A DNA stretch of 64,000 bases from Antechinus flavipes. Its lineage: Eukaryota. The DNA is taken from assembly GCF_016432865.1 (NCBI RefSeq), contig NC_067398.1:652860001-652924000 (forward strand). Direction: 5' to 3'. The stretch's first letter is position 1. Each line of letters starts with the position of its first letter. The position numbers were made by a program, and so were the translations under genes. This document shows, piece after piece, positions 8,099 to 17,447 of this stretch. The notes beneath the pieces are model-generated. The model searched no databases. It was not told the origin of the DNA and saw only the letters and a program-made list of their open reading frames with translations.

Positions 8099-11000
8099 TC
8101 ATAAATGGTCCTCAACCTCTTCAAACTGGGGCTGGAGCTCAGGTTGGGATGGACATTGAGGCTGGAGCTCAGGCTGAGACTGGGATTGCGATTGGGACTG
8201 ATAAGGCAGGGGGTGAGATTGAGGCTCTGGCTCAGGGCAGCATTCTGGTATCTGGCTATCCGGGACCTCCTCTCTCTGGAGTTTAGAGAGAAGTCTGGCT
8301 GTTTCCTGGGTAATCTCAAAGTGCTTTGGCAGTTTGGCTCGGCGAAAGGGACTGCTTTCTGGGGAGGCGCTGGCCCAAGACCCCTGCCCCCGAAGGCTTC
8401 CATGTCGGTCCTTGATAGGAGTTTCTTCACAGAGTGTAGAGGCCACCAGGGCCAGACTGGACAACTGGTGAATGACTGGCCTGATGACCCCTGCCCGGGG
8501 ATATTTCACAGGCTGGCGACTAAAGTGGCCTCGGGACTGTGTACCTAGTGGAGTTTCCTCACGAACTTGATTGGAATCTACAGAGGAAAGGGGACTGATT
8601 AGTTCTAGGCTCCCTAAATCTTCTTCCAAAATTATCCCTATATACCCATTCCTCAGGGAATTATTCCCTGGAATATTTGTACCTTTAGGCCCCCACAATT
8701 ATCCCTAATTCTAATACCCTCAGTTCTATAGGCACCTAGTAGCTCAAGTAGATAGAGTCATGGATCTGGATCAGGAATTATTCAGTTATGTCAGACTGGA
8801 TTAGATTAGTGACTCTGTGAACCATACTACCCATGGGGTTTTCTTGGTAAAAATTCTGGAGTGGTTTGCCATCTCCTTCAGTGGATTAAGGCAAACAAGA
8901 ACATAAATGACATACCTAGAGTCACATGGCTAGTTAAATGTCTAAGGCTGGATTTGAATTCAGGTTTTCCTGAATTCGGGCCCCTGAGCATCTAACTGCC
9001 TCTGGAGTCAGGAATATAATATGTAAGAGATAACTGAAACTTACTACCTATTTTTTTTGTTTGTTTGCTTTTTCCTGAGACAGTTGGGGTTAAATGACTT
9101 GTCCAGAATCACACAGATAGGAAGTGTTAAGTGTCTGAGACCACATTTGAACTCAGATCCTCCTGACTCAGGGCTGGTGCTCTATCCAATGCGCCACCTA
9201 GCTGCCCCTACTTATTTATTTTGAAGAAGTCACTTAACCTCTCTCTGTATCAATCTCTTCATCTGCAAAATGGGGATATCTATCTCCCAGAGTTGTTATA
9301 AAAATAAAATCTCTCTCAAATGTTTTGCAAATTTATGTAAATGCTAGCTATTATTATTACTTGGCAATAATTAAATCCATCGAGGGCAACTATGCCAAAC
9401 CTCCCAGGGATGCTCAAGATATCAGTACTCTCAACCTTAGTTACCTCCCAAAGTAATCCCCAAATCTTTGACACAGAGCCAGATCCACCTAAGAATTCCA
9501 CGACTCAAAGTTCAAAATACTCCCAACCCTCTTTTAACTACTACACTCACCTTCTCCTCCCTCTTCTGAGGAGTTCCCAATGACCCACTCAACGAGGTCA
9601 CCTTTGGATGGTGATGTCTGTGAAGAGAAGCATCAGTGTGACCCAAGAGATCCCTATCTGATTACACCTCGAGACTGAATCCAGAATAGAACTACAGGGC
9701 AACCCAAACTGAAATTAGAGACCAAAGGTGCTGACCTGGTGAGTCAGAAGATTTAGCCCAAAACATAGATCCAGAGATTTTAGTCCCAAAAGTCAAACCT
9801 AAGAACAAAAGCATCTATACACTGGAACAGAAATAGAGAAATCCTGAGAGTTTTCCTGAGGGACTCATAGAGTCTTACCTTGGCCACAGACACACATGGA
9901 TGGATTCCTACTCAGTGAATCTGGCCCAGGACAGACTCCAACACACTGTTAGAATCAAGAGTATTCAGGACCTCTCACAAATCTCACTCTTTCCCTACTC
10001 CTTGGAAATCCTTTGGGAGTTTCTTGAAAAGCCAAATAATTTCTCCCCTTAGCAGAATTTATACAAAATCTTAACCATTTTTGGAGCAAATTGCACTGAT
10101 AATATAAAACAATCCTTCAGGTCTGTTGAAATTTGGGTAAATTCATGCTTTCATTATCCATCATATTTCTAGGAAATACCACTCCCCATTTCCTGTGCAA
10201 CTCTTTTTAGAAAGTCATTTCTTCTAATATTATATGATTCCCCTATCCTCTCTAACACTGCAGCCTCTATAGCCACTGTATAGACACAGTCACCACCCCT
10301 CACCCTGGACTGTTAGCATATTACTTTTCTTCCCTGTTACCCCACTGTTCCCGTTCCCCTCCCCCATTACCCTTAAACTGTTTCACCATTTCCCTTGACT
10401 CAACCCAGGCTCTCTGGCAGTGTACAGGACTTCCAGAGAAGTGTGGTAGAGGGGACTGGAGCCTGACTAGAAATGGACCCTACCTCATCAGATGATGCTT
10501 GGACCCCTGAAGCCTCAGTTTCCTCTTCAGCAGAGGTCTGTGTGACAGGCTCCAGAGTTCCAGAGTCAGATATTTCTGCAGTGGTCGGAGGGAGTTCTTC
10601 CATGCCAAAGACATGCTCATAGTGGACGATGAGGAACTCAATCATCTGGGCCTGGTATCCTGAATCCAGGAGGCAGGCCACTGGGCTGGTGCTGATTCCA
10701 CCCTGGTCTTTTGGTGGCCGCAGCAGTGTTGGCCCAAACACAATGCCCAAATTGTTGGCCGACATCTTATTTTCCTCAAACCTAGAGGCTACCCTGGAGG
10801 AAGACCCGAGTTCAGAGGTTGCTATCTAGCGACCTCTGCTTAGCCCCTGACCTTAGCACTAGACCCAAGCCTACCTGAACAGATGCGCCACTAGGTGCCG
10901 GAGAGTATTGTAGTTAGAGTCAGGCAACTCTCTCAAAAGAGTTCTCAGGGCACTGACAGCTTCAATCACAGGGTCAGTATTGGGGATGGAGTCAAGATTG

Positions 11001-14000: not shown

Positions 14001-15663
14001 ATAAAGCTGCATGTGACCTCAGAGACCGCCGAAGTCAAGTGGCCTCCAGGGTCACGGGAGACCGGCCTGAGAGCCACAATCCAATGCCGCTTTCCTGATC
14101 CCTAGGCCTGTGCTCTCTCCTTTGAAGGCAGAGAGACTGGGGGAGGGGAGAGGGGGGTACAGGGCTGAGAGAGAGGGGAATGACTGCCTAGGATGAAAGG
14201 GACATACCTGCTGCTGGAGGGATGCCTTTGCTGCCTCAGCAAGTTTCATGATGTTTTTGGAAAATTCCAGCTCTGGACAGGGAAAAATAAAAGGAAGTCT
14301 GAGGTTAAGGGCTCTGACCAGGAGTAGCCGATTCTAAAGGGTCAGAGGGGGAAGCTGAGAAGGCCAAGGTTAAAACCCTGGGGTCCAGAAGTTAGAGATA
14401 GTGTCCAGAGGCAGAGTGGAGACAAAGGGTGGGGCCAGAGGTGAAGGGCAGGAATCACCATAGCTGGCTCTCTTCTCAGTCCAGTTTAGGATCTCTTTTA
14501 TGTGTCTGCTCCACATTTTGGCATAATCCAGGGCAGCCTCCACGCCTCCTTCACTGCGTACAAGCCGGGTGTCCAGTTCCTCCCCTTAGGACAGAGGGTG
14601 GATTGAAGAGACCAGTCCAATCTGTCCTTAACCTGACCCCAGCCTCCAGCCCTTGACCCCAGCCTCTACCTGTGAGGAGGATGGGATCTCCAGGGGGGGA
14701 GCTGCTCCAGCTTTGGGTCTCATTAGTCTAGGAGAAAAGCTCAGTGTTTGGCCGGTGGTCAATGACTCTTCGAATCCTACCCTAGGATCTCGGTAGGAAT
14801 TCTTGGAACTGCCACCATCCTTCCCTCTCCCTTTCCTCTTACCTCTACTCTTGGCTCAGAGTCTTGCAGAGGTTCTGGGTCTCCAACCAACATTTCCACA
14901 GCCCTGGAGGTGGGAATAGGGGTGGAGGTAGGTTAGGGTCCTCGTGGCTGAATGGGGGGGGGGGGGGATCATAGCGGGTTTGGGGGATTTAGAGGGTCAA
15001 TCTGGGGTCGAGGTTTATTTTTCACCCTCCGGTCCTTCCTCTCATACCCCCAGACTCACGCATTTCCCAAAGAAATCTCCAGGTTGTCCAGGCTCCTGAA
15101 GATATCACTGTAACGATTTCTGTTCTCAGTACCCCGAGTCTGGGGGAGACCTGGGGGTGGGGGTAGGCGTGTAAAAGGGGTTGTCGCCTACTAGTTAGTT
15201 GTAGACACCCCAACTTCGCTTGCCTCTTGCACATGGCCCACCTGGAAGCAGGTGTTCCTGAACCTGAAGGAAGTTCAATGCCAGGAAGGCTCAGACCCCG
15301 GCCTCCGTCTGCCTTCCGGATTGAGTTTCTAATGGGATTTAGAGCTCCAGAACTCCCAGAGGCGCAGACACTCACACGTGTGTGGACACCGGGGCACAGG
15401 TGTGCACTTACACATGCACACACACACACACAGAGAGACATACCTGTGCCCAACACACACAAGGGTGCTCGGTGAAAGCCGCCGGGCCCTTCCCCCACCC
15501 TATTCCAGAGTCAGCAGAAGCAGAAGCAGCCACTTCCCCCACCTAAGCAACCGGATGGGGGAGGGCCGGGGCCGAGGGTGAGGAGGGGGCAGTTGTGGGG
15601 AAAGGAGGAGAGGGCAACTTGAAACCTCATGCCCCCCCTCATACCGAGCTGGGCTCCTTCCAT
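8099..15663 (-). CDS. GMIP: GEM-interacting protein (F-BAR / C1 / RhoGAP), short isoform, 952 aa, 20 coding exons: 15645-15663, 15060-15150, 14843-14903, 14670-14727, 14459-14584, 14208-14272, 13842-13952, 13627-13707, 13407-13553, 13185-13322, 12853-13049, 12655-12755, 12467-12556, 12127-12281, 11840-12028, 11287-11424, 10875-11110, 10484-10793, 9551-9617, 8099-8577
   Basis: All introns GT-AG and phase-compatible; total 2859 nt (953 codons). Motifs RYSDIFRSLDNLEISLGN, GGVEAALDYAK (F-BAR), HRFRKLRGPAKCREC...CHKRC (C1), GIYRISG (arginine finger), MSANNLGIVFGPTLLRP, GTQSRGHFSRQPVKYPR, C-terminus EDHL. First exon GCCATGG, MEGAQLG (19 nt), parallels human MDAAEPG. Confidence 0.92.
8770..9005 (-). 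mobile_element. MAR1-like SINE
   Basis: Reverse-complement match to the element at 5273-5532 (gggttttcttggtaaaaattctggagtggtttgccatctccttcagtgg). Confidence 0.6.
9053..9208 (-). mobile_element. WSINE1-like tRNA-derived SINE
   Basis: Reverse complement of ggggcagctaggtggcgcattggatagagcacc...gagttcaaatgtggtctcagacacttaacacttcct...(A)n. Confidence 0.8.
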
Positions 15664-15870
15664 GGCTCCAGGTGCAGGCCCAGAGGGCTGCTTGGTGGAG
15701 GTGACCGGACGCAGCCAAGTTAGGGGCCAATCTCTCCCCTCCCCCGCCCCCCAGGCTTCCTGCTTCCGCGTGGGGACCCGCCTTCCCTCCACAGGGCGGG
15801 GACACGCCCGGCGGGAAGTTCACGGTGCCCCCAGTTTCTCGCTCCCGCCCCCATGTGCCGGTTCAAGGCG
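15664..15870 (-). promoter_or_regulatory. Putative promoter of the short GMIP isoform
   Basis: GC boxes and ETS-like GGAA cores (tgcttccgc about 15761, gggaagtt about 15814) immediately upstream of the MEGAQLG exon. Confidence 0.5.
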
Positions 15871-16077
15871 AACAGGTCAGAGTCTGGGAATCTCTGCTGG
15901 CAGGCCGGCATCGCCAGCCCAGGTCACCATCGAGGCTCGGAGCCCGGACGGGGCCCCGGGACCTGGCTGCTCCCCACAGCCAGACACACTCACACCGGCT
16001 CCAGGGCTTTCCCAAGCGGCGCTGGCCCCGCCCCCGGAGCCCAGGCCCCGCCCCCACCCGAGTCCCCGCCCCCTCAC

Positions 16078-16517
16078 CTTGCACTGCGCGGACTAACGCG
16101 GCCGCAGCCCCCCGGACGCAAGGTCCCGCCAGCCCCGGGAACCGGGCCTGGAGCTCGGCCACTGCCTGAAGCAGGTCACCAAGGTGAGTTTCTAGCGGGT
16201 CAGGCCCGGCGCCGCCTGCGGAGGAGACGGTGTGAGGGTCCGGCTCGGCGGGCACGACTCCCTCCCCCCGGCTGCTGGCCGCTCCGCGCCCCCCACTCAC
16301 AGCCCTCCCGGTACAGCGCCCGAAAGTTGAGGAATTTCCCGTTGATGTGGCGTAGGTGCGCCGAGACCCGGCGGAGCTGGCCTGGCGAGTCCCAGCCCGG
16401 GTCAAGGCCGGCCATCCGGCGCGCAGTCGCCTCCACGGGGCCCAGGCATCGGGCTTGCGCGGGGGGCTCCCCGCCGGCCCCAGGCCGGCTCCTAGCTTGC
16501 TGGTATTTGTGGCCCAT
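16078..16517 (-). CDS. GMIP: Putative alternative upstream GMIP coding exons A (16301-16517, 5' limit uncertain) and B (16078-16215), ARHGAP29/45-like N-terminal helical domain
   Basis: Exon A ends ...HLRHINGKFLNFRALYREG-T|GTGAGT (phase 1); 85-nt intron; TCTCCTCCGCAG| exon B C-GAGPDPLETHLGDLLQAVAELQARFPGLAGPCVRGAAAALVRAVQ-G|GTGAGG (phase 1), in frame with GMIP exon 2. Confidence 0.7.
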
Positions 16518-17240
16518 GGGCTGCCCTTGGCCCCGGCCGGCTCCGGGCCTCCCGAGAGCTCCGGAGGTCCGGGAGCCCAGTGATGCCGCTCCTGGGTAGC
16601 TTTCCCGGGGGCTGCCCCAGCCAGGTCATGTTCAGGTGGCCGGGCCACATTCCAGATCCTGGCTGCCAAGCTAAGTGTTAACCCCTCCCTGGCTGGGAGC
16701 TCGCCAAGCAGGGGAGGAACCTCATAAAGGGAAGGGGAGGCACTACTCCCGGGGCTTGAAATCTGGGCCAGGGAGTCGCAAGGCCCCGGCTGAAGCCCAC
16801 TCATCTGGTTCTGTTCCTGCCACACCGTGACATCACCAGCCATTAGCAGGTGGAGGGAGAAGTTGTGACACGGGGAGAAGGATCTAGATCATTTTTTGTT
16901 GGCTCCAGAGTCTTAAGGGGAAAAGAAAAAACCTCTTGCCATTAAAAAAAAAAAAGTTAAGGGGAGAGTTAACGCAGGCCGAATGGGTTCAGCAGCAGCT
17001 CGGGAGGTACCAGCTAGACCAGTTGTTTGGAATGGACAGAGGGTGGGACTCTGGGTGAGGAAGGAAGCCTTACAGAAACCAGCCAAGCAGGCTGAGGTAG
17101 CTTCACTTGTCTGCACTGTCTGCCCTTCCCCCCTTCCCAAATCCAGGAACTCCTCTCCAAAAAGAGTTCTGAAATCTCTCATCCCATCATAACAACAGAC
17201 AGCTGAGTCTCATGTTAATTTTAAAATACGCTGATGCCGC

Positions 17241-17246
17241 TTTATT
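17241..17246 (-). terminator. Likely ATP13A1 polyadenylation signal (AATAAA)
   Basis: tttatt on + strand, about 200 nt downstream of the ATP13A1 stop codon. Confidence 0.65.
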
Positions 17247-17447
17247 TACCAAAGGGGGAGGGAATAGAGCAGGGGGCCACAGTACAAAAGGTTCCCACTT
17301 AAGTCTGTCCTAGAACATCACTTAGAACGTTGATGGGCAGGGGGTGGTCACTGCTCCTCCCTATAGTCTGGGCTCATCCAGGCCCCCATCCTGGGGTGAC
17401 ATGGTCGCCTGTCCATGGTCCTGGGAAGGAGGGCCTTAGGTTCAGGC

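Follow-up and report, generated by a model that had tools for sequence, protein, structure and literature searches.

ARHGAP29 (PARG1) and ARHGAP45 (HMHA1), which are paralogues and not orthologues of GMIP, carry an N-terminal domain followed by F-BAR/FCH, C1 and RhoGAP domains, the same order as in the long form of GMIP (GMIP-long). The Pfam family for this N-terminal domain is PF24235 (RHG29_45_N, 108 positions). Neither paralogue is known to have an alternative short start. In ARHGAP45 the whole N-terminal region acts in auto-inhibition (PMC3781157). The GMIP studied in human and mouse is without three of the four helices of the domain common to ARHGAP29 and ARHGAP45. Here we analyzed the GMIP gene in a 64-kb window of the Antechinus flavipes genome (the whole stretch of 64,000 nucleotides), where two exons, designated A and B, lie upstream of the first exon of the annotated product of 952 amino acids (aa). 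It is highly probable that these exons are real and open the coding region of a long GMIP isoform of ~1064 aa, in which they complete the RHG29_45_N bundle, and that an internal start gives the 952-aa form.

Two candidate coding exons upstream of GMIP exon 2

The first-pass annotation of the window, made from the letters alone, had described exons A and B as joining exon 2 in one frame. Reading of the minus strand confirmed their coordinates (Table 1), the GTGAGT donor, the phase-1 state of all junctions and the single open frame from A through B to exon 2; the acceptors are pyrimidine-rich, and exon A terminates with ...YREG plus one base at 16301, i.e. in phase 1. The short first exon encoding MEGAQLG was found where it had been placed (15645-15663), between exon B and exon 2. 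When this short exon is swapped for A and B, 112 residues are added, so that the product goes from 952 aa, the length on record, to the 1064 aa originally proposed. A further in-frame ATG is present in exon A at 16415. Residues 1-44 of this exon are low-complexity and not conserved, and residues ~45-72 (16385-16302) correspond to helix 1 of the N-terminal domain. Our hand-built exon chain encodes 956/1068 aa as compared with 952/1064 aa, one junction being 12 nucleotides (nt) off the model on record; this discrepancy has no effect on the exon A and B finding. At the acceptor of the last GMIP exon (8565-8577, minus), there are two possible in-phase sites 12 nt apart (…ctctgtag and …aatcaag), and this tandem acceptor may explain the surplus of 4 residues.

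It is homology, and not the open frame, that places exons A and B above chance. A RhoGAP exon of the window served as query in a library-wide protein search for full-length relatives. In blastp, the spliced A+B+2 peptide matched gecko GMIP isoform X3 (P0008, 1052 aa) with 46.7% identity over 105 residues, in an alignment that begins at residue 45 of exon A and runs unbroken across the exon joins; stingray and teleost GMIP matched too, more weakly. A tblastn search of the whole window with the gecko protein found exon B with its exact borders (16216-16076). We then used a hidden Markov model (HMM) of ~125 positions trained on 42 complete N-domains, which came from GMIP-long, the two paralogues and invertebrate relatives. 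With this family HMM, spliced A+B+2+3 reached 90.2 bits over positions 8-122, a full-length profile match, as compared with 49.1 bits for the N-terminus of the short form. Exon A covers positions 7-33. Exons A+B alone scored 31.4 bits, while the top score of 2000 A+B shuffles was 5.7 bits. Of the 2706 open segments in the six frames of the window, all scanned with the HMM, exon 2 ranked first (expectation value, E, 5e-9), exon B second (E 0.0066) and exon A fourth (E 0.3), and these three matches are collinear and all on the expected strand. Against the family alignment, hhalign gave a probability of 91% and E 9.4e-7 for exon B, and 63% and E 7e-5 for exon A. The profile similarity to ARHGAP29/45-type N-termini that had been predicted from the letters is thus borne out once GMIP-long sequences are part of the model.

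Identity and fold of the N-terminal domain

The gathering score of PF24235 is 27.7 bits, and both gecko GMIP P0008 (32.3 bits) and stingray GMIP P0019 (36.5 bits) are above this threshold. In these two proteins the domain occupies residues ~55-160, immediately N-terminal of the GMIP-like FCH domain; the domain encoded by Antechinus exons A+B+2-3 is likewise positioned directly before a GMIP-like FCH. Among 50 sauropsid GMIP clusters, precomputed PF24235 matches are found on long isoforms only. Short GMIP forms, primates included, match the last third of the profile only (HMM positions ~86-122). These data agree with two proposals of the first-pass annotation, namely that exon 2, the best match in the window, continues the domain and that human-type GMIP starts within it. 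What the short form lacks, the first two thirds of the ARHGAP29/45-type domain, is encoded by exons A+B.

The gecko domain, modelled with AlphaFold2, consists of four helices (mean predicted local distance difference test score, pLDDT, 79.8; predicted template-modelling score, pTM, 0.73). Mapped onto Antechinus through the alignment, helix 1 is encoded by exon A, helices 2 and 3 by exon B and helix 4 by exons 2-3. The top matches of the gecko model in AlphaFold DB are the N-termini of ARHGAP29 (template-modelling score, TM, 0.71-0.79) and ARHGAP45 (TM 0.67-0.73). The structural comparison suggested by the first-pass annotation therefore came out in favor of a four-helix bundle of ARHGAP29/45 type, on the gecko orthologue. 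As judged from sequence, the link of the Antechinus domain to ARHGAP29/45 is secure only through the GMIP-long orthologues. A Cys at the exon junction had also been put forward as conserved with the paralogues. This did not hold, as the gull has a Gly there and the gecko differs, and the residue was dropped as a family marker.

Long and short GMIP forms across vertebrates

Annotations of birds, squamates, a stingray and a teleost include long GMIP isoforms with the domain. Since these lineages have it, the domain is ancestral to GMIP, and the proposal that Antechinus keeps an ancestral domain stands. The candidate long GMIP of Antechinus is, on its sequence, orthologous to the long isoforms of birds, squamates, rays and other marsupials. 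The black-headed gull gene (locus L005, protein P0166 isoform X1) has the same architecture: the first coding exon stops at the equivalent residue in phase 1, the second exon has 138 nt, is in phase 1 at both ends and shows the same ...V(K/Q)-G|L junction as Antechinus exon B, and the exon in third position equals Antechinus exon 2. A short first exon (MGDPEPS plus a split Gly) is located at position 7784 of L005, inside the 9.8-kb intron before the exon-2 equivalent. Such short first exons, of 7-8 codons with a split Gly at the end, are found in birds, turtles, squamates, primates and a stingray, and the two-start architecture is therefore old.

Because all junctions are in phase 1, both 5' ends can be spliced to exon 2 without loss of frame and exon B is usable as a cassette. 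In owl GMIP isoform X2 (P0173) and snake isoform X3 (P0170), the exon-A equivalent is joined to the exon-2 equivalent and the 138-nt exon is skipped; by analogy, skipping of exon B could also be possible in Antechinus. Transcripts begun upstream of exon A would encode a GMIP with a complete four-helix bundle before F-BAR/FCH, and transcripts begun at the internal exon MEGAQLG would encode the 952-aa GMIP with helix 4 only, unable to form the bundle, so that the choice of transcription start would decide the presence of the bundle. We infer from the genomic sequence that Antechinus transcripts include exons A and B in spliced form and that two promoters exist; both transcription starts probably lie in the CpG island that covers this region. 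Marsupials, birds, reptiles and rays would in this way be able to make both GMIP versions via alternative first exons.

The intron just downstream of the short first exon contains a 25-nt element, GGGGAAGTGGCTGCTTCTGCTTCTG (15515-15539, minus), which occurs at the equivalent place in the macaque locus (100% identity) and in Peromyscus (96%). It includes a GGAAGTG core of ETS/PU.1 type, which would fit an element close to the promoter of a blood-cell gene. A (TG)n microsatellite is also present between the short first exon and exon 2 (15420-15445, minus).

The two starts need not constitute a real switch. The long form could be constitutive, or the main form, in marsupials, with a short start that is minor or tissue-restricted, or translation could begin at ATG 16415 and not at 16517. 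In keeping with this, several marsupial annotations give the long product as the longest, and the conserved part of exon A starts at residue 45, past both ATGs. However, the short first exon has been kept from stingray to primates, which argues for function, and the 25-nt element downstream of it is identical in macaque and nearly so in a rodent. We consider this alternative very improbable.

The longest GMIP product of each species was taken from the gene tables next to LPAR2. This product is 952 aa long in Antechinus, 1066 and 1117 aa in two assemblies of the Tasmanian devil, 1066 aa in the fat-tailed dunnart, 1172 aa in the opossum, 1024 aa in the koala, 1077 aa in the tammar wallaby and 965 aa in a eutherian, the tenrec (Echinops). 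A faint PF24235 match is on record for the wallaby; none is on record for Antechinus, devil, dunnart, opossum or tenrec, and the koala product has no Pfam matches whatsoever on record. The lengths of the fourteen 3' exons in devil and dunnart equal those of Antechinus, with the sole exception of one dunnart exon that is 3 nt longer. It follows that the extra ~114 residues of the devil and dunnart products are at the 5' end, and they fit the 112 residues added by A+B. Very probably, the long isoform is unannotated in Antechinus and present in the annotations of its relatives. It had been called hidden, a description that is right for the Antechinus annotation, from which it is absent, and wrong for other marsupials, which have longer products on record. 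The opossum (1172 aa), koala (1024 aa) and one of the devil products (1117 aa) have lengths that differ from the short form plus 112, and these species may have further upstream or internal alternative GMIP exons.

These annotations also bear on the possibility that exons A and B are relics, coding in the marsupial ancestor and silenced recently, so that Antechinus makes the 952-aa form only. The record for this genome, which lists just the 952-aa product, is compatible with such a loss, and eutherians demonstrate that exons A and B can be lost. Nevertheless, the frame is still open, neither the two donors nor the acceptor is damaged, exon B retains its 138 nt, and the devil and dunnart products on record carry their surplus at the 5' end. 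In addition, nothing recognizable is left in two eutherians that lack both exons, indicating that decay is fast on such a time scale. We consider recent silencing an unlikely explanation.

The two eutherian loci are those of Peromyscus (L006) and the pig-tailed macaque (L008), both of which include the whole interval between the last ATP13A1 exon and GMIP exon 2. No trace of exons A or B was detected in them by HMM scan, tblastn or blastn. One may imagine that GMIP has had two 5' ends since early jawed vertebrates, that eutherians deleted both long-form exons, that human and mouse GMIP is a derived truncation and that marsupials are the only therians to keep the switch; we give this scenario an even chance. 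If it is true, and if the bundle takes part in auto-inhibition or partner binding, like the entire N-terminal region of ARHGAP45 (PMC3781157), eutherian GMIP would have lost one regulatory layer.

Several observations weigh against the assignment of exons A and B to a long GMIP isoform. The annotation of the Antechinus genome carries the short form only, and the devil, dunnart and opossum products are, as said above, without PF24235 on record. An HMM made from the paralogues only gives the spliced N-terminus just 22 bits and does not recognize exon A. This low score explains why several marsupial products are without PF24235 on record, and also why the direct alignment to ARHGAP29/45 in the first-pass annotation was thin; over exon B, that alignment does agree with the HMM consensus. 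Scanned singly against Pfam, the two exons and the open stretch of 326 aa gave no match, because these pieces are too short for the 108-position model. An exon-B search, made with the 326-aa stretch against candidates of 179-570 aa and with full-length proteins outside its reach, returned nothing to E 10. A search with the gecko N-domain returned sauropsids only; a marsupial long form would sit at the edge of the candidate selection, and its absence from this search is thus no evidence. Finally, exon B lies within a 326-codon stop-free stretch and the regional G+C content (GC) is ~0.74. Such GC-rich CpG-island sequence is expected to stay open, so that an open frame alone is weak evidence.

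The stop-free stretch, the GC of 0.74 and the blank Pfam result on either exon alone are what one would expect if A and B were open only by chance and their splice-like motifs had also arisen by chance, within a CpG-island promoter or a 5' untranslated region. The homology data contradict this view: the A+B score far exceeds that of every shuffle, the gecko match is contiguous across exons A, B and 2, the exon borders, phases and 138-nt length are identical to those of the gull gene, and the three HMM matches were collinear in an unbiased scan of the window. Chance is effectively refuted already and retains next to no probability. Taking A and B as the first coding exons of GMIP-long, the Antechinus gene model is incomplete, and the ~1064-aa isoform belongs beside the 952-aa form. 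The finding is mainly one of missing annotation, as the long isoform is already annotated in other vertebrates.

Gene context and comparison with known systems

Table 1. Features of the GMIP region in the Antechinus window. Positions are counted from the first letter of the window; helices are those of the N-terminal domain.
Feature	Position	Strand	Description
Exon A (candidate first coding exon of long GMIP)	16301-16517	minus	ATG at 16517; donor GTGAGT
Intron A-B	16216-16300	minus	85 nt; GTGAGT ... ctcctccgcag
Exon B (candidate)	16078-16215	minus	138 nt; phase 1 at both ends; acceptor ctcctccgcag, donor GTGAGG; helices 2 and 3
First coding exon of the short isoform	15645-15663	minus	MEGAQL plus split Gly; inside the exon B-exon 2 intron
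Exon 2, in both isoforms	15060-15150	minus	acceptor cccccag; contains …RYSDIFRSLDNLEISLGN; start of helix 4
Exon 3, in both isoforms	14843-14903	minus	end of helix 4
CpG island	15800-16600		GC 0.69-0.76; CpG observed/expected 0.67-0.88; spans both candidate exons and the sequence upstream of the short first exon
ATP13A1 3' end	coding region stops near 17440; AATAAA at 17246	minus	
LPAR2	4483-3005	minus	downstream of GMIP

On the minus strand of the window, the genes follow each other in the transcription order ATP13A1, GMIP, LPAR2 and PBX4, of which only the start is included. This conserved PBX4-LPAR2-GMIP-ATP13A1 synteny, together with the FCH-C1-RhoGAP architecture, identifies the gene as the GMIP orthologue. 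Over its 244 residues, the first coding exon of LPAR2 is 244/244 identical to LPAR2 of A. flavipes. In the annotation record (CM028217.1 of GCA_016432865.2), the Antechinus GMIP product matches PF22699, PF00130 and PF00620, and is without PF24235. Around the ATP13A1 poly(A) signal, 37 nt (17219-17255) are 89% identical to macaque and probably form a conserved 3'-end processing element.

A literature search found no paper on the RHG29_45_N domain in GMIP or on a long GMIP isoform. The evolutionary point may thus be new to the literature, even though public databases already include the isoforms and the Pfam family.

As to the role of the bundle, our best guess is regulation or the binding of partners, as suggested by FAT-like four-helix bundles and by ARHGAP45, whose N-terminal region is auto-inhibitory. 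FAT-type bundles (the FAT domains of FAK/Pyk2, the GIT1 PBD and the p130Cas C-terminal domain) are up-down four-helix bundles of similar size that match the gecko model with TM ~0.5-0.6. They rank after ARHGAP29/45 as structural matches, with E > 0.05 and without sequence relation. This resemblance is one of generic fold only, and binding of LD-type helices by the modelled bundle would be speculation.

Compared with the GMIP-long of gull, gecko and stingray, the Antechinus gene is the same and encodes the same N-terminal domain ahead of FCH. The Antechinus long form is GC-rich, has more Ala, Gly and Pro and has diverged further than the sauropsid and ray forms. The two introns are very short (85 nt and 927 nt; 1.3 kb and 9.8 kb in the gull); the Gekko GMIP gene spans 118 kb. 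Eutherian GMIP (human-type, ~970 aa; here langur P0002, macaque, Peromyscus and Echinops) is also the same gene, with the same synteny, a short first exon of the same type and the same sequence of exons from exon 2 onward. In eutherian GMIP, helix 4 alone remains of the domain.

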